Position numbers and translations under genes: made by a program. Below the pieces are notes generated by a model. It made no database searches, was not told where the DNA came from, and saw nothing but the letters and a program-made list of their open reading frames with translations. 64,000 nucleotides of DNA, from the sequence record PQ464590.1. One strand, written 5' to 3'. The first letter of the stretch is position 1. Each line of letters starts with the position of its first letter. Shown one piece after another: positions 9,316-59,695 of the stretch.

Positions 9316-10182
9316 ATGAGTAAGATGAACCCATTAGCACAGTACACTAAAATTGAAGTACTGTTTACAAAGCTAATCACTAACGATGTTATAAAATACC
9401 CCGAAGGTGTAGTGAGCAGTACAAAATGCGGTATCTGTGCTCGCTCTGCACGTGATGAGATTGTACTAAACACCGCAGATGCACTAATTGGTGGTGATGC
9501 AGTAGTTAAAGTTATAGAAAACTGTGTTCCTAATGTATCTGATGCTAGTAAATTGTATGTTAACGATGTTGAACAGCTTCTTATTGGTATCAAACTAGCA
9601 ACTAAAGATGAATCCTACGATATCAACGTAGAATGTCCAGAGTGTGAACATCTTGGTAGTTTCAGTCGTGATTTGAATTATCTAATGAACACTGCTACTT
9701 CTTTTGATAAACAACCAACTGTTACAATGGAAAACGGTCTAACTATTTTCTTCCGTCCACAAACATGGGCTGAACACTCTGAATTCAGTACTCGTGTATT
9801 CCAGCAACACAGTCGTTCTAAGAGTATTGATTTGTCAGAAGACATGCCCGAAGAAGAAAAAATTGCTATTTTTGCAGAAATCTTCCAGGAAATGACTCAA
9901 ATCAACTACGATATGATTGTCACTAGTATTGAAAAGATTATCACACCAGAAGATGTTGTAGTAACTGAACCTGAATACATTGCTGATTGGGTTGGCTCTC
10001 TAAGTAAAGCGGATTTGAAAATAGTTCGTGATGCGTCTGACGAGGTAGTGAATGTTGGTATTAGTCATAACATGGAAGTGGAGTGTAATAAATGCCATCA
10101 TGCGTGGGAAATTACTGGTCTACGATATGATCCATCTAATTTTTTCGGACTAGACTTCTCATCAGTAAGCCAGAAGAAATAA
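9316..10182 (+). CDS. Baseplate hub/tail assembly chaperone, T4 gp26-like
   Basis: Motifs MNPL.QY, ARDEIVLNTADAL..G.AV..VI..CVP, D...LLIGI..AT, CPEC and C-terminal CNKC; GGAG SD. Confidence 0.7.
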   Translation: MSKMNPLAQYTKIEVLFTKLITNDVIKYPEGVVSSTKCGICARSARDEIVLNTADALIGGDAVVKVIENCVPNVSDASKLYVNDVEQLLIGIKLATKDESYDINVECPECEHLGSFSRDLNYLMNTATSFDKQPTVTMENGLTIFFRPQTWAEHSEFSTRVFQQHSRSKSIDLSEDMPEEEKIAIFAEIFQEMTQINYDMIVTSIEKIITPEDVVVTEPEYIADWVGSLSKADLKIVRDASDEVVNVGISHNMEVECNKCHHAWEITGLRYDPSNFFGLDFSSVSQKK

Positions 10183-10355
10183 GTGAAATTATAAGGGAAA
10201 TGGAGTTCAACGTCAATGACATTCAGGTGTCATTGATGGATGCTGCTGTCGCAATAGAGAACACTAGCTATGAGGCTCTATTGAATATGCCAGTGCAAAC
10301 AAGGGACTTGATGGTGAAGTCGTACAACAAGAGACAAAAGAAAATGAATCAATAA
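10140..10355 (+). CDS. gp51-like short domain in the -1 frame (frameshift extension, or independent 51-aa gene from ATG 10200); not in the ORF track
   Basis: Open frame 10140-10355 (FFRTRLLISKPEEISEIIREMEFNVNDIQVSLMDAAVAIENTSYEALLNMPVQTRDLMVKSYNKRQKKMNQ). The SYEALLNMPV.TR motif resembles gp51/GT-type chaperone domains; the frame ends right at the terminator. Confidence 0.7.
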   Translation, partial: FFRTRLLISKPEEISEIIREMEFNVNDIQVSLMDAAVAIENTSYEALLNMPVQTRDLMVKSYNKRQKKMNQ

Positions 10356-10381
10356 CCAGCATATTGTTGCTGGTTTTTTTT
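10355..10381 (+). terminator. Intrinsic terminator
   Basis: ACCAGCA-tattgt-TGCTGGT followed by a T run. Confidence 0.8.
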
Positions 10382-10567
10382 ATGTCTAAAATTCTTGAAG
10401 ATTATATTTGATTAGCCAATCTTCGATTGTCTAAGAATTTTCAATTCATTTATCATTCACTTCGTTCATTCTAATGAATCTCAATTCATTTAATATTCTT
10501 ATGTACTTTAATACTTGACGGGATTTGTTGAGGCAATTTCATCCCCCCGCAGGGGAATGAAGACAAT

Positions 10568-10590
10568 AAAAAAAGACCCAATGAAGGATC
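10568..10590 (-). terminator. Intrinsic terminator of the candidate ncRNA
   Basis: GATCC-TTCATT-GGGTC followed by TTTTTTT on the minus strand. Confidence 0.6.
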
Positions 10591-11025
10591 TGAATATTGC
10601 TTGACGCTGATAGCATCGGAATTATTGTATCGTGAATTTCTGAACAAGTCAGAACGAAAGCGGGTTGCTCTGTTTCTCTCGAATTATCACGGTCATGTGC
10701 AACGGTCGTAGTCTTAGTACGCGTACGTTATAATCTATACAATCAAATCATAACGTTGTTCAAATTTCAGGCGGATCTATAGCCAGCCTTAAATCGAACT
10801 CCCTTAGCAAGTGTGGTAAGGCGTTCCTTATATGTCTATCGAGTGAACGTCTGTCTGCTTATCGCGTTCATTTATAGTGCCGCATTGCCGTGGGTGGTAC
10901 AAACTATGCCATCTCCTAACGGGTTTCTTCTGCACTGCGTAGTCATAGGTCTACTCATCCATCCTCTACATTTTCGAGTGAATTGGGTTTCGCCTGTATC
11001 ATTTTTACTGATCCCATGAGCCTGT
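10568..11025 (-). ncRNA. Candidate structured non-coding RNA (~460 nt)
   Basis: Starts 7 nt after the conserved promoter at 11032-11061 and ends at the hairpin GAUCC-uucauu-GGGUC plus U7 (10590-10568). No credible ORF; several stems contain G-U pairs only on this strand. Confidence 0.5.
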
Positions 11026-11031
11026 ACACTT

Positions 11032-11061
11032 ATTATATCACATTTTATAGATCTATCCCAA
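11032..11061 (-). promoter_or_regulatory. Conserved phage promoter, copy 1 (TTGGGA-N18-TATAAT)
   Basis: TTGGGATAGATCTATAAAATGTGATATAAT; the same motif occurs at four other sites. Confidence 0.75.
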
Positions 11062-11105
11062 AATTATTAAATACTTTACCACATAACAGTACTGAAGGAA
11101 TAACA

Positions 11106-11588
11106 ATGAGTAGAAGAAGACTAAAGGATTCAAAAGATGCTAGTCAGTATCGTTCTGAACTCCTAAAAGAACAAAAAGGATTAGATCCAATCATTAAGAA
11201 ACCAGTGAAAGACGCAGTACTTGACCATAAACATTACGGTGATCAAGAATGTCGTGCAGTACTGGAACGTACCGTGAACTCGTTCGAGGGTAAAGTCCAA
11301 AATGCGTTCAATCGGTATATTAAGCATCTCACCGATGCCGATATAAGCTCCGTATTACGCTCTCTAGCCGATTATTACGAGTTAGACACATCCCACCAGC
11401 CTATCCACCATACGGCCCTCACAATCGATGTGAAGAGGTTTAAAGCCCTACCAGCTAAGCAGCAAATTGAAGTACTGGAAAGCTTTGGAGTCATTCCAGA
11501 GAGTAATGTTAAGAAAAGAGCCAACCAAGCGAGAAAACTCATCAAGGAAGGTAAGCTAGATATGCAATTAATAAAAAAAGGAGCCTAA
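11106..11588 (+). CDS. gp49: Recombination endonuclease VII (Holliday junction resolvase), T4 gp49-like
   Basis: Q.G.DPI, VLDH.H, R.VL.R.VN.FEG and the downstream L..Y...D....PIH pattern align with gp49. Start moved to ATG 11106 after GAAGGA. Confidence 0.8.
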   Translation: MSRRRLKDSKDASQYRSELLKEQKGLDPIIKKPVKDAVLDHKHYGDQECRAVLERTVNSFEGKVQNAFNRYIKHLTDADISSVLRSLADYYELDTSHQPIHHTALTIDVKRFKALPAKQQIEVLESFGVIPESNVKKRANQARKLIKEGKLDMQLIKKGA

Positions 11589-46467: not shown

Positions 46468-49400
46468 ATGTATTCTATAAAATCTGATCTAGGTGTATTA
46501 GGTAATAGTACATTAGAAAAAGCACTACTCGTTAAAGGCGATGCCATTTTTAAACAAAATGTCACCGTTGAAGGGACTGTGACTTTTGCTGATGCAACTT
46601 TCACCCAACTCACTGTCACTGGCACGGCTGCTTTCGCAGATATTACCGCATCTGGTGACACAACATTAACAAACCTCGCGACAACTGGAAACACTGTTCT
46701 CGGTGATGCAAGTACTGACACCGTTGTAGTTAACGGTACTGCTTCTTTTGCCGCACCAGTTTCACTAGCTGGCGATGTAACCCAAGCGGCTGGTACAGCA
46801 TCATTCAATGATGTAGCTGCTAAAACTCTAACCGTTGATGGTCTTTCTAAGCTTGACGGAAATCTTGAAATGAAACCAACCAGTACTGCTACTCTAGGCG
46901 ATACTGATGTTCAAGACCTAACCGTTAATGGCGTAACCGTAATTAAAGGTACTAGTACTTTTGAAGAGAAAGCAACCTTTGGTGATGTAGAGATTAACGG
47001 TACTCTATCTGGTACTCTAACAATGGAAGATGGCAGTTTCACTAACTTAACTGTTTCCAACGATAGTACTCTAAACAAACTAAGCGTAACTGGTAACGCA
47101 GTTTTCGGTAACAACATTTCTGGTCTAACCAGTACTGCTACCCTAGCTAACGTAACCATGAACGGTCAAGCTGCTATTATCACGTTCAACTACAACGATG
47201 TAGCTAATCCATCCTACATTAAATCAAGTATTCAGCCATACAAAGTTAGTACTCAAGAAATTCAATCTAATATCGCTGATATCACTCGTATTGAAGTAGG
47301 TTCTGAAGCTGATGCTACCAGTACTAATGGTCTACATTCCCTTGGTAAAGCAACTATGGATTACGTTGCAATCAAAGGTAACACCACCATCGGTACTTCA
47401 CAACCACAACTAACTGTTGCTGGTGCATCTGTATTCTCTGGTACAACAACTGTTGGTGATCTAGTAATCACTGGTTCAGTAACTGGTCTAACCTTTGATG
47501 ATATCACTACAAATAACTTGACTGTATCTGGTGCAAGTTCTCTACAGAACGTAACCATGAGTGGGAACCTAACTGCTCTAAACAGTACTGCAACTATTCA
47601 AAACATCACAATGAATGGTCAGTCTGCACTACTAACATTTAACTACACTGATAGTTCTAACCCTTCGTACATCAAATCTAGTATTCAACCTTACAAAGTA
47701 AGTTCTCATGAATTCCAAGGCGATGTGGCTAGTATTCGTGAACTAAGCACTGGTGTTCTAAATGATACTATCATTGGTCACAAAGGTCTAGGTGTGAACG
47801 AGCTAGATTACGTACACGTTAAAGGTAACAGCACAATCGGAACTTCTCGTAAACAGCTAATTGTTGACGGTGACAGCCAATTTGCAGGTACTACAACTGT
47901 TAACAACATCGTAGTAACTGGTACTACTACTGGTATCACTGCGGACGTTGCTGGTGCAGACATTACCCCTAACAGCGTAACTGCAACTGCTGGCGTTGAA
48001 GCTGCAACTCTAGAAAGTACAACTACTACCACTGTTGGTACTGACCTAACTGTACTAAACGGAACTGCGACTATTAAAGATCTAGTTGTTACTGGTACTA
48101 CTACTGGTGTTACCGTTGAAGCAAACGTAGATGGACTAGATATCAAACCTGCTTCGGTTGAAACAACTTCTGATATTATTGCAGGTGCTGATTTAACTGT
48201 TGCTGGTACATTGTCTGGGGCTTCATCTACTGCATTGAAAACCAATTCAATTTCCGTAACTGGTACTGTAAATGTTAGTCAAAATGTGAATGCAGCAGGG
48301 GCTTCCTTTACACAAGCAGGAACTGGTCTAGATGTTACCAACAATGCTCATGTCGGTGGAACACTAACTGTTGATGGAGACACTGCATTCGGTGGCGAAA
48401 CTGGTACTACCACAATTCACGACCTAGTTGTTACTGGTACTACTACTGGTGTTACTGTTGTTGCCGATGTTGATGGTCTAGATATCAAACCTGCTTCAGT
48501 AGAATCTACTGGTATTGTTACTGGTACAAACCTAACTGCATCTGGTACTGTTTCTGGTGCAACCGTTCAAGCTGGTGCATTAACTGTAACGAATGACAGT
48601 ACTGTAGGTGGTGATTTAACCGTAACTGGTACGCTATCTGCTGGTGCTATTGATTTAAGCGGAACTGACATTAGTGCAAATAAACTAACAACTACAACTA
48701 CAGTAGACGTAGGAACTGACCTAACTGTTGGTGGCACTGCAACTGTAACTGGTGCAGCACAGTTTAATAATACACTAACCGTAACTGGTCTTTCTACATT
48801 AGGTGCAGTAACTGCATCCGACGTTCAAGCTTCTGGCACGGCACAAGCAAATTCACTAAATGTTACAACTGATGGTGTAATCGGTGGTGATTTGTCAGTA
48901 ACTGGTACACTAACTGCTGGTACTATTGATTTAGGTGCTGCTGATATCTCTGCAAATAGTCTTACGACTGTTGCTGGTGTTACAGTTGGCTCTGATTTGT
49001 CAGTAGCTGGTAACGTAACTGGTACACTAAAAACTACCAACGTAACTACGAGTGGTACTCTAGGAGTAACTGGTGCTTCCACCCTAGGTTCAGTAACTGC
49101 AACAACTGTTGGTGCTTCAGATCTAAATCTATCAGGTACACTATCTGTTACTGGTGCAGCAACATTCGATGGTGATATCACCTCTTCAACTGAAACTGTT
49201 GCAATTGCAAAAAATACTGCAATTACTGGTGATTTGGCGGTTTCTGGCACACTAACTGCTGGATCAATTGACCTAAGTGGTACTGCAATTAATGCTGCAT
49301 CACTTGATACTACTGGAAATGCTCATGTTGGTGGTGATTTAACAGTAGATGGCACTTTCGACCTATCTGGTACTGACCTAGCAGCAGCTTCACTTGCAAG

Positions 49401-50955
49401 TGCTGGTAACACTACTGTAGGTTCTGCATTGGTACTAACTACTGGTACTGTAACTGGTTCACCTTCTATTTCTGGTACACTAACTGTTGCTGGTGCATCA
49501 ACTGTTGCAGATTTAGCTGTTGGTGGTACAATTACTAAAGCTGGTGGCGGTAATCTTGCAATTACTCCTAGCACCGATTTCGCTGGTGATGTAGCCGTAG
49601 CTGGTGATGTAACCGTAACTGGTACTCTAACACCATCTGGTGGTTTAGACCTAAGTTCTGCTGATATCACAGCTAATAGCTTGAGTGTTGCTCAAGGTGT
49701 GGAAACTACTCAAAATGCAACCATCGGAACTTCATTAACTGTTGGAACCACGCTAGGCGTAACTGGTGCAAGTACATTGTCTGGTGGTGTAACTACTACT
49801 ACTGTATCTGCTTCTGGTCTAGTATCTGCTGGAACTCTAACCAGTACTGGAATCGCAACCCTAAGTGGTGGTGTAACTACTACTACTGTATCTGCTTCTG
49901 GTCGTGTAACTTCTATCGAAGCACAAGTTGGTGCTGGTTCATTCGACACTAACTACAAATTGAACGTGAATGGTAACAGTATCTTCAACGGTGATGTATT
50001 CATTGCTGGTAGATTGAACGGTACTATCGACCTAAGTGGCGTTGACTTGAACCCACGTAACGTAACTGCGTCTGGTAACGGTTCATTTGCTGGTACATTG
50101 TCTTCTGGTGATACGTTTACTGCTCCTACTGGTATCTTTGGTGTTGAAGGAAGCGTAAACAACAGTCTACAAGTTAACGGTAACGTTGTTGCAACAGGTG
50201 ACTTCGAAGTTGGTGGTGTAATTAAAGGTACTCTTGACCAATCTGCTGCTGCTGTTACAGTAGGTTCTCTCGAAACTGCTCTAGCTGGTGGTATTACTAT
50301 TGGTGGAAACGGTCCTCTAGTTCTTGGTTCAGGAGGTATCATTACTGGTGCTCCAGTAATAAGTGGCAACACTACTGTTGGTGGTACATTCACCAGTACT
50401 GGTCTAGCTACTCTAAACGGTGGACTAACCGTAACCGGAACAACAACTCTAGGTTCTACAACTTTAGGTGCTACAACTGCTGCAAGCCTATCTGTTACTG
50501 GTATTAGTACTTTAAGTGGCAACACTACTGTTGGTGGTACTCTAGATGTAACTGGTAAAACCACTGTTGCTGATCTAGAAATCACTGGTACTCTAACTAC
50601 TAATGTCGCTGATTTGGTAACTGACTCTGTTAGTACTAAGCGTTATACTGTTAAACCAATGAACGTAGAAACTACAGTAACTTCAGGTTCTTGGACTCCA
50701 GATGGTACAAGTAACGTTTACAACGTAACAGTAACCGGAGCGACTCAGATTGGTAACATGCCTAACCCAAGTGGTGAAGCTGGTTCTTGGTTCATTTACT
50801 TGACCAATACCGATGGCGGTGCAATCAGTATGGGTTCTGCTTATGCACAACCTTTAGGAGAATGGGGTACTACTCCAGGTGGCGTAACTATCTGTCAAAT
50901 CGTGTACTGCGGTGTTGGCTCAATTTACGATGTATTCCTATCACAACGTGCTTAA
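46468..50955 (+). CDS. Long repetitive T/G/V/S-rich fibre protein (~1495 aa)
   Basis: Short beta-strand repeats (L.V.G..T..G.L.V.G) with internal duplications and a distinct C-terminal domain; late promoter at 46407-46412; GGAGG SD before ATG 46468. Confidence 0.8.
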   Translation: MYSIKSDLGVLGNSTLEKALLVKGDAIFKQNVTVEGTVTFADATFTQLTVTGTAAFADITASGDTTLTNLATTGNTVLGDASTDTVVVNGTASFAAPVSLAGDVTQAAGTASFNDVAAKTLTVDGLSKLDGNLEMKPTSTATLGDTDVQDLTVNGVTVIKGTSTFEEKATFGDVEINGTLSGTLTMEDGSFTNLTVSNDSTLNKLSVTGNAVFGNNISGLTSTATLANVTMNGQAAIITFNYNDVANPSYIKSSIQPYKVSTQEIQSNIADITRIEVGSEADATSTNGLHSLGKATMDYVAIKGNTTIGTSQPQLTVAGASVFSGTTTVGDLVITGSVTGLTFDDITTNNLTVSGASSLQNVTMSGNLTALNSTATIQNITMNGQSALLTFNYTDSSNPSYIKSSIQPYKVSSHEFQGDVASIRELSTGVLNDTIIGHKGLGVNELDYVHVKGNSTIGTSRKQLIVDGDSQFAGTTTVNNIVVTGTTTGITADVAGADITPNSVTATAGVEAATLESTTTTTVGTDLTVLNGTATIKDLVVTGTTTGVTVEANVDGLDIKPASVETTSDIIAGADLTVAGTLSGASSTALKTNSISVTGTVNVSQNVNAAGASFTQAGTGLDVTNNAHVGGTLTVDGDTAFGGETGTTTIHDLVVTGTTTGVTVVADVDGLDIKPASVESTGIVTGTNLTASGTVSGATVQAGALTVTNDSTVGGDLTVTGTLSAGAIDLSGTDISANKLTTTTTVDVGTDLTVGGTATVTGAAQFNNTLTVTGLSTLGAVTASDVQASGTAQANSLNVTTDGVIGGDLSVTGTLTAGTIDLGAADISANSLTTVAGVTVGSDLSVAGNVTGTLKTTNVTTSGTLGVTGASTLGSVTATTVGASDLNLSGTLSVTGAATFDGDITSSTETVAIAKNTAITGDLAVSGTLTAGSIDLSGTAINAASLDTTGNAHVGGDLTVDGTFDLSGTDLAAASLASAGNTTVGSALVLTTGTVTGSPSISGTLTVAGASTVADLAVGGTITKAGGGNLAITPSTDFAGDVAVAGDVTVTGTLTPSGGLDLSSADITANSLSVAQGVETTQNATIGTSLTVGTTLGVTGASTLSGGVTTTTVSASGLVSAGTLTSTGIATLSGGVTTTTVSASGRVTSIEAQVGAGSFDTNYKLNVNGNSIFNGDVFIAGRLNGTIDLSGVDLNPRNVTASGNGSFAGTLSSGDTFTAPTGIFGVEGSVNNSLQVNGNVVATGDFEVGGVIKGTLDQSAAAVTVGSLETALAGGITIGGNGPLVLGSGGIITGAPVISGNTTVGGTFTSTGLATLNGGLTVTGTTTLGSTTLGATTAASLSVTGISTLSGNTTVGGTLDVTGKTTVADLEITGTLTTNVADLVTDSVSTKRYTVKPMNVETTVTSGSWTPDGTSNVYNVTVTGATQIGNMPNPSGEAGSWFIYLTNTDGGAISMGSAYAQPLGEWGTTPGGVTICQIVYCGVGSIYDVFLSQRA

Positions 50956-59665: not shown

Positions 59666-59695
59666 ATTATATCACATTTTTTGAGTTCATCTCAA
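59666..59695 (-). promoter_or_regulatory. Conserved phage promoter, copy 5 (drives the MoxR-vWA pair)
   Basis: TTGAGATGAACTCAAAAAATGTGATATAAT. Confidence 0.7.

Follow-up and report, generated by a model that had tools for sequence, protein, structure and literature searches.

What is transcribed from a promoter that points into DNA without a reading frame? The question is raised by Erwinia phage Hallingskeid, a jumbo myovirus with a 366-kb genome that is grouped with 121Q, PBECO4, GAP32, CBB and BF. The window analysed here is a stretch of 64,000 nucleotides (PQ464590.1, bases 186001-250000), and positions below are those of the window unless the record is named. Five near-identical promoters lie on its minus strand, with -35-like ends at 59694, 56657, 38629, 15726 and 11060. 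ORFs of 442, 80, 765 and 287 aa start 27-131 nt downstream of four of them; no ORF of at least 40 aa starts within 260 nt of the fifth (11060). This promoter and ORF check confirms what a first-pass annotation had claimed, namely that one promoter copy aims into ORF-free DNA and the other four drive protein ORFs. That annotation had gone on to propose an undescribed large phage ncRNA of about 460 nt, or else an R-loop primer RNA for an origin.

The promoter in question (11061-11032, minus strand) is of the sigma-70 type and reads TTGGGA-18-TATAAT with TG before the -10 box; a promoter scan gave 10/12 consensus matches with the TG present. Its parts are a -35-like TTGGGA/TGGGAT, a short palindrome in the spacer and an extended -10 box, TGA-TATAAT (11040-11032). 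Transcription is predicted to start near A11025, a position that is inferred and not mapped. Members of the window's promoter family (11060, 15726, 38629, 56657 and 59694, minus strand) follow the pattern TGGGAT(A/G)GA...AAAATGTGATATAAT, and a palindrome such as GATAGATCTATA is frequent between the -35-like box and the -10 box. This promoter class, given for phage CBB as TGAAACG plus a -10 box upstream of DNA-synthesis genes, has been called 'divergent RpoD-like' (PMC5259590).

The element behind the promoter occupies roughly 11061-10380 on the minus strand, between the endonuclease VII gene and a baseplate-hub operon. The endonuclease VII gene lies on the plus strand, most likely at 11106-11588. 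Its GenBank start, ATG 11016, overlaps the RNA promoter (region 11016-11105); the alternative ATG 11106 has a Shine-Dalgarno-like GGAA upstream and fits the 160-aa orthologues. The hub operon (9316-10355, plus strand) converges on the element and ends in a plus-strand terminator hairpin with an 8-bp stem and T8 (10354-10375), which is likely both the end of the read-through RNA and the outer edge of the element. GenBank draws three short plus-strand ORFs, CDS0412-0414 (30-68 aa), over the RNA at 10515-11019; they are probably spurious. Elsewhere in the Hallingskeid record, at 48853-49420, another stretch of ~570 nt, within an array of minus-strand genes, has no ORFs except tiny ones on the opposite strand. 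The RNA-family profile does not match this stretch, which may be another non-coding element.

A blastn search of 50,697 phage records found the region in 62 jumbo phages at 68-88% identity. Most of the matched genomes carry it at 4-5 separate places, and most records annotate nothing there. The search for homologues in related jumbo phages recovered about 60 distinct, non-identical copies, gathered by pattern scans of IMG/VR and profile searches. Another ~29 loci in viral contigs met a loose pattern only; they had no family similarity, most were GC-rich, and we discarded them as chance matches. Hallingskeid itself has five copies, all on one strand (52.7-53.3k, 119.3-120.0k, 196.4-197.1k, 275.6-276.3k and 340.9-341.7k of the record, the third being the window copy). 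In a tree the copies fall into five paralogue classes. Each is monophyletic across GAP32, CBB, BF and Yen9-04, and in the 121Q and Hallingskeid lineages the paralogues are homogenised to some degree. Between genera, megablast matches the RNA element only and not the flanking genes; hence the element is under stronger constraint than its protein-coding neighbours. The promoter aligns in every homologue, and bacterial copies, described below, read TGAAAYG...TATACT. The homologue alignments contain no coding signal in the form of three-base periodicity or a conserved ORF, and the region holds only short non-conserved ORFs. Mismatches are flat over codon phases (8326/8428/8485), and 2936 of 3674 indels (80%) are not multiples of 3.

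In the alignments, invariant blocks alternate with inserts of variable length. As far as comparison of sequences can establish a fold, they define an RNA with three 5' helical domains and a 3' domain that two pseudoknots lock in place; its single-stranded loops and junctions are long and invariant. All helices are given for the minus strand. In the 5' domain (10942-11019), P1 (11019-11012/10949-10942; 92% paired, 49 double changes versus 13 in shuffles, 0/300) encloses hairpin P2 (11011-11008/11001-10998; 86% paired, 90 double changes versus 35, 0/300) and P3 (10980-10976/10966-62, one bulge; conserved loop GAAAAUGUA), and the conserved strand CAGAUGAGUAG comes next. Domain 2 (10876-10936) arranges P4 (10936-10932/10880-10876; 100% paired, 48 double changes, 0/300 shuffles) and the nearly invariant P5 (10922-10919/10891-10888; 100% paired) about a hairpin that varies; the strands GAAGAAACCCGU and CACGGCAAUGCGGCAC are invariant. 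The P6 region (10800-10870) comprises hairpin P6 (10870-10864/10850-10844; 89% paired, 125 double changes versus 32, 0/300), conserved GAUAGACAUAUAAGG, the small hairpin P6a (10830-10827/10820-10817; 85% paired in a register slid by +2) and conserved UAAGGGAG. A variable insert (10757-10799) follows, with an optional hairpin (GGCUGG 10788-10783/CCGCC 10774-10770) whose loop is CUAUAGAU. According to the alignments, an optional module with the same conserved loop (AAUAUAGAUCC) is found here or inside P11 and is present or absent copy by copy. This hairpin module (10770-10788, loop (A/C)UAUAGAUCC) has two insertion points, after UAAGGGAG or inside P11, and may be a peripheral tertiary-contact element.

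The 3' double-pseudoknot domain (10603-10756) contains P7-P12, PK1 and PK2. Compensatory changes are seen in P7 (10756-10745/10736-10725) and P11 (10654-10649/10643-10638). P9 (10691-10687/10635-10631) and P10 (10680-10676/10660-10656, loop AAACAGAGCAACCCG) are 100% paired, as are both pseudoknots: PK1 joins the P7 loop (10742-10737) to 10630-10625, just 3' of P9, and PK2 joins 10703-10699 to 10668-10664. P8 lies at 10721-10718/10710-10707, and P12 (10617-10613/10607-10603) pairs in both indel variants but has a score of only 31% in the MAFFT columns. The four stems that the first-pass annotation had picked out by eye turn out to be family-wide helices, namely P7, P11 and P6, which have compensatory changes, and P12. 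The 9-mer UUCACUCGA that it had seen twice is indeed present at 10982-10974 and 10847-10839; it is not conserved, however, and about 0.5 such repeats are expected by chance by our estimate.

We tested the 3' domain (10762-10598) on 52 sequences, 48 of them distinct, with a proposed structure of 49 pairs. Cells were paired in 87.5% of cases versus 66.3% in shuffles (0/500), the covariation score was 0.572 versus 0.192 shuffled (0/500) and 0.07-0.13 in partner-slid controls, and 35 pairs change on both sides. RNAalifold independently predicts P7-P11; run on the whole-length MAFFT alignment, it recovers only part of the fold. PK1 occurs in eight six-base versions, every one perfectly complementary (52/52 copies), and by eye its pairing also fits the bacterial copies. 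Covariation at PK1 cannot separate intra- from intermolecular pairing. One conjecture is that these paralogue-specific six-base codes pair between molecules, which would give RNA-only multimers sorted by paralogue. For the 458-nt Hallingskeid window sequence taken alone, folding energy does not go beyond shuffles (z = -1.15 sense, +0.93 antisense). Support for the fold therefore comes from covariation, and the stems first noticed could not have been demonstrated from one sequence. Structure conservation in relatives, the absence of which would have refuted a structured RNA, was found: the helices covary in the jumbo-phage homologues. Across these, G-U cells outnumber A-C cells by 391 to 139 and several pairs are near-invariant G-U. 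Hence the RNA is the minus strand, as had been argued from G-U pairs in the single sequence, and a purely DNA-level element is excluded.

Where does the RNA end? A terminator scan located the hairpin with U7 that had been described as closing the ORF-free DNA, at 10591-10567 (minus strand; T1, 6-bp stem 10591-10574, U7 10573-10567). T1 is found in three paralogue classes, and the 93-99k class builds it from GUCAGA/UCUGAC plus U8. Two classes, 24-35k and 335-340k, lack it, as does the Hallingskeid 341 kb copy; in bacterial copies a hairpin remains, without the U-run. Beyond T1, all phage and bacterial copies have a C-run/G-run hairpin, T2 (10561-10552/10547-10538, loop UGCG, minus strand), with many G-U pairs. 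No U-run follows T2, which is thus not a terminator by form. Next comes a motif that is likewise present in all phage and bacterial copies, CAACAAAUCCCGUCAAG (CAACAAAUCYCGUCAG; 10530-10514, minus strand). The G-run of T2 has an alternative partner in a downstream UCCC/CCCC (10546-10543 with 10523-10520, within 10520-10547), which is 88-100% canonical across copies and may be a structural switch. The tail domain (10400-10490, minus strand) has a closing stem (GAAUU 10487-10483/AAUUC 10439-10435) and an inner hairpin with conserved ACGAAGUGA. A last hairpin with a 5-bp stem, GAC-[CAAUC GAA GAUUG, 10429-10417]-GG (minus strand), was counted in at least 39 of 70 copies; its stem has at least seven compensatory versions, and every variant seen is Watson-Crick. 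A+U makes up 67% of the tail and 59% of the core, and the purine content of the tail is 57%.

Two further observations concern the tail. TGAAT/ATTCA-like motifs recur every 10 bases at 10441-10490 (AATGAATTGA at 10490 and 10450, AATGAACGAA at 10470, GTGAATGATA at 10460); they may form an array bound by a protein, or may merely belong to the hairpins of the tail. We also considered a tail TTGAC as a -35 box, and by eye found no consistent -10 box at 17 bp except in one paralogue class.

Conservation and covarying hairpins thus extend ~230 nt beyond U7, to about 10400, with a tail of ~130 nt. It follows that the functional end of the RNA is not at U7 and that the unit measures ~680-700 nt (roughly 11061-10380). 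The proposed transcript of ~460 nt survives as a probable short form, a core of ~458 nt ending at T1; it does not survive as the conserved unit, in which U7 is internal and not universal.

Does this RNA belong to a known family? Rfam 15 gave no match at gathering score in the whole window. With the threshold relaxed to E 10 for 10300-11200, and to E 5 for a bacterial homologue, nothing but noise appeared; no Rfam family, group I/II introns, 6S, OLE and HEARO included, matches either the phage or the bacterial copy. ARAGORN found no tmRNA or tRNA in the window. Together with Rfam 15, this agrees with the early statement that no tmRNA, RNase P or intron hallmarks were recognised. RNase P is recognised by conserved P4 strands of the GGAAAGUCC / ACAGAAxCCGGCUUA type plus a universal core. 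A likeness to it was noticed by eye in ACAGAGCAACCCGCUUUCG; we rejected it, as that stretch is the P10 loop plus 3' strand and takes part in PK2, and no RNase P model matches. The RNA is not described in the genome papers on CBB, phAPEC6 and fEgEco12 or in the literature searched. Judged by comparative evidence, the element is a gene for a large pseudoknotted ncRNA of an uncatalogued family, its biochemical function unknown. The idea of an undescribed large phage ncRNA is in this respect borne out, but the RNA is peculiar neither to Hallingskeid nor to this locus, with five paralogues per genome and copies in bacteria.

The bacterial copies came from a scan for a 23-base pattern in which each bacterial species was represented by one genome. 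Seven full-length homologues were found, all in Enterobacterales assemblies except one 2.8-kb contig binned as Clostridium; the hosts include Serratia, Enterobacter and Buttiauxella chromosomes. The copies have a tyrosine or large serine integrase immediately upstream and a CI/LexA-type repressor towards which they converge, or else ParB-like genes beside them; this places them inside integrated temperate elements. In E. coli, a copy is present in 2 of 5,426 complete genomes. That of LR-29-1 is 80.6% identical to the BF syntenic copy and occupies a 1.4-kb gap without annotation in an island next to ffs; the island bears an integrase and the candidate defence system PDC-M45 (DuOB + DUF488). Metagenomes add copies of both the jumbo-phage and the bacterial type; plasmids and sequenced temperate phages gave no match to the RNA. 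Bacterial and jumbo-phage copies share no protein neighbours in 624 kb of jumbo-phage loci, and the only proteins to which Pfam, PHROGs and PADLOC gave a name were integrases, CI, ParB-like proteins and the PDC-M45 neighbours. In Klebsiella phage K64-1 the syntenic hub-endonuclease VII spacer is without the element: a matching terminator is followed directly by the A+T-rich promoter region of endonuclease VII, which is ~110 nt long. This empty site gives the boundaries of the cassette. Alcyoneusvirus phages gave no match in any blastn search. Taken together, the empty K64-1 site, the lack of an Alcyoneusvirus match and the copies in bacterial mobile elements indicate that the RNA is accessory, portable cargo.

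What might such cargo do? The reading we favour, though we rate its chances as no better than even, is an autonomous accessory structured RNA that is transcribed by the host polymerase in two lengths and acts in trans as a folded RNA or ribonucleoprotein. Transcription, the two lengths and trans action are all inferred, and no transcript, partner or phenotype is known. Host RNA polymerase would start near 11025; some transcripts would stop at the U7 hairpin and give the ~458-nt core, and the remainder would pass the C/G hairpin and the structured tail to ~10350, giving ~680 nt. The RNA may then act away from its own gene, either as a compact scaffold or in the manner of a ribozyme-like particle, and its invariant loops would bind a protein or RNA common to Enterobacterales hosts or their mobile elements. 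As accessory cargo it could serve in phage-host or phage-phage conflict, with five diverged paralogues raising dosage, providing several specificities, or both. Independence from neighbouring genes, horizontal spread and the optional internal terminator are demonstrated by the comparisons. Trans action is proposed only because of context and the stand-alone form of the gene, whose promoter is common to protein operons; at the syntenic and prophage copies the neighbouring genes converge, so there is nothing downstream to regulate. Three points weigh against parts of this reading. A gene that acts purely in trans would not be expected to show the regular 50-85 kb spacing and the common orientation of the copies. 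The paralogue classes are old, distinct and not homogenised, and position-specific roles fit them at least as well as dosage. Finally, the gene start 20-40 nt after the tail in four of the five classes would also be explicable by a leader function.

The spacing bears on the strongest rival. In Hallingskeid the gaps between the co-oriented copies are about 67, 77, 79, 65 and 78 kb; across genomes the copies keep one orientation and gaps of 50-85 kb, with a CV of 0.10-0.21 in seven genomes (random placement of five points, P 2e-4 to 4e-3 per genome). Such evenness argues for a role that depends on position and keeps the origin-primer idea open, even though the genomes are related and the spacing is effectively one observation. 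Each copy would be an origin, of the ColE1 RNA II or T4 oriF/oriG type, whose transcript forms a persistent RNA-DNA hybrid at the C/G hairpin and A+T-rich tail and primes or loads the replisome, five spaced, co-oriented origins serving the 366-kb genome. We consider this unlikely, but not to be dropped. A promoter consensus for a promoter-driven transcript is present and conserved, although transcription itself was not observed; the RNA is similar in size to ColE1 RNA II; a C4/G6 element precedes a tail of 67% A+U with phased TGAAT-like repeats; and the cassette is portable among mobile elements. On the other hand, the tail is not purine-rich (57%) and covaries as hairpins, like the core, and in three classes a good intrinsic terminator precedes the zone where the hybrid would form. 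So many invariant loops and two pseudoknots are more than known primer RNAs need. In close relatives that share the replication genes, the site is empty and there is no copy. Nor do the prophage copies, which stand alone, lend support. Cumulative GC skew lacks an inflection at the 276 kb and 341 kb copies, which is weak evidence in T4-like phages. An R-loop origin primer is neither shown nor excluded. A broader version, also improbable in our judgement, is that the five co-oriented copies act in cis, with a cassette of promoter and folded RNA that marks R-loop replication-initiation or chromosome-organising sites in giant phages and integrative elements.

The genes downstream suggest a different action in cis. 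In four of the five paralogue classes a co-directional gene starts 20-40 nt past the tail and heads a long same-strand array, and T1 lies directly after the core. The nascent RNA might thus stay on RNA polymerase, as put of HK022 and EAR do, and make it resistant to terminators, driving the long co-directional arrays or, where genes converge, read-through against the opposing gene (cI in prophages, the hub operon here); the prophage copies, aimed into cI, are without the U-run. We hold little hope for this explanation. On their own strand, neither the window copy and its orthologues, opposite the converging hub operon, nor the prophage copies are followed by a gene; they are thus not in the position of an antitermination leader, which the other four classes do occupy. 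In at least one class the tail contains, by eye, a promoter-like site of its own for the next gene. Moreover, 460-700 nt with a compact, trans-like fold is much for an antitermination function, put and EAR being 70-120 nt long.

The cassette could also be a selfish RNA gene that persists by duplication and transfer rather than by benefit to its carrier. It is multi-copy and intergenic, has its own promoter, is present or absent at the K64-1 site and turns up in unrelated mobile elements. We give this scant credence, as syntenic positions are kept across genera, each class is monophyletic across GAP32, CBB, BF and Yen9-04, and loops and pseudoknots are under strong purifying selection in every copy; terminal inverted repeats or target duplications were not noticed in the alignments, without a dedicated search for them. 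That there is no RNA at all, only a DNA-level site or the small proteins of the three opposite-strand GenBank ORFs, is hardly tenable despite the annotation of CDS0412-0414 as hypothetical proteins and the all-Watson-Crick variants of the tail hairpin, since codon periodicity is absent, the frame is lost at most indels, the ORFs are not conserved, and the near-invariant G-U pairs would become A-C if the other strand or the DNA were the functional form.

What is new, then, is a pseudoknotted large RNA family that is multi-copy and regularly spaced in jumbo phages and common to bacterial mobile elements. To our knowledge, large structured RNAs with conserved pseudoknots are rare, and those known are ribozymes, ribonucleoprotein cores or unsolved (OLE, GOLLD, ROOL). 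The fivefold, even, co-oriented layout, and the fact that the RNA has moved between lytic jumbo phages and temperate elements, point to a role in genome organisation or in conflict between mobile elements and hosts. If the cis-acting reading were true, this would be a structured pre-primer or marker RNA family without a known phage counterpart. The family occurs in cultured phages of E. coli, Salmonella, Serratia, Erwinia and Yersinia (121Q, PBECO4, phAPEC6, BF, CBB, GAP32) and is hence open to ordinary phage genetics in laboratory strains. The analysis also corrects annotation, as short 'hypothetical proteins' are called over the RNA loci in many GenBank records.

Among known systems, the T4 origins oriF and oriG are comparable in that Hallingskeid is a member of the wider T4-like group, that an early or middle-type promoter would give the transcript and that a genome has several sites. 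We know of no conserved RNA structure shared by T4 origins, which are located inside genes; in the present family the RNA fold is the conserved feature. The put and EAR RNAs resemble it in their place between a promoter and a terminator, close to both, where long gene arrays begin, as in four of the five classes. They differ in length from the 460-700 nt found here, and one class and the prophage copies have no downstream genes. The ColE1 RNA II pre-primer is a promoter-driven folded RNA of ~550 nt that is followed by a G-run/C-run element and a DNA-synthesis start site and needs only host enzymes. Our RNA is similar in being a folded RNA predicted to be promoter-driven and followed by a C-run/G-run element, but it has an internal terminator, much stronger conservation of sequence and pseudoknots, and no plasmid match. 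No conserved promoter of the antisense RNA I type was seen opposite the element: the only plus-strand promoter-like sites, at 10427-10456 and 10601-10628, are at chance level (14 found, 13 expected), and the latter overlaps the PK1 sequence, which is variable between copies.

ORF-free transcripts are also known from the jumbo phage PA5oct, a distant relative of Hallingskeid's phage group, where RNA-seq defined ncRNAs of 236-619 nt (PMC7318152). We compared one of these, ncRNA002 (451 nt), with the RNA family and rejected it as a homologue for lack of similarity; the comparison was limited to ncRNA002. The closest parallels in kind are GOLLD (RF01998) and ROOL (RF03087) of Firmicutes phages and prophages, which are likewise several hundred nt long with many helices, pseudoknots and highly conserved loops, and are stand-alone phage or prophage genes whose function is not known. 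Both are reported to form RNA-only multimers (bioRxiv 10.1101/2024.12.08.627333). There is no match to them in sequence or structure, the hosts here are Enterobacterales, no tRNA genes are nearby in the window, and the present RNA occurs as five diverged paralogues per genome at regular spacing. With more than 400 nt, a multi-domain pseudoknotted fold supported by covariation and long invariant unpaired stretches, it nevertheless meets the criteria for a large ornate ncRNA, and its likeness to OLE, GOLLD and ROOL is one of kind, not of descent.
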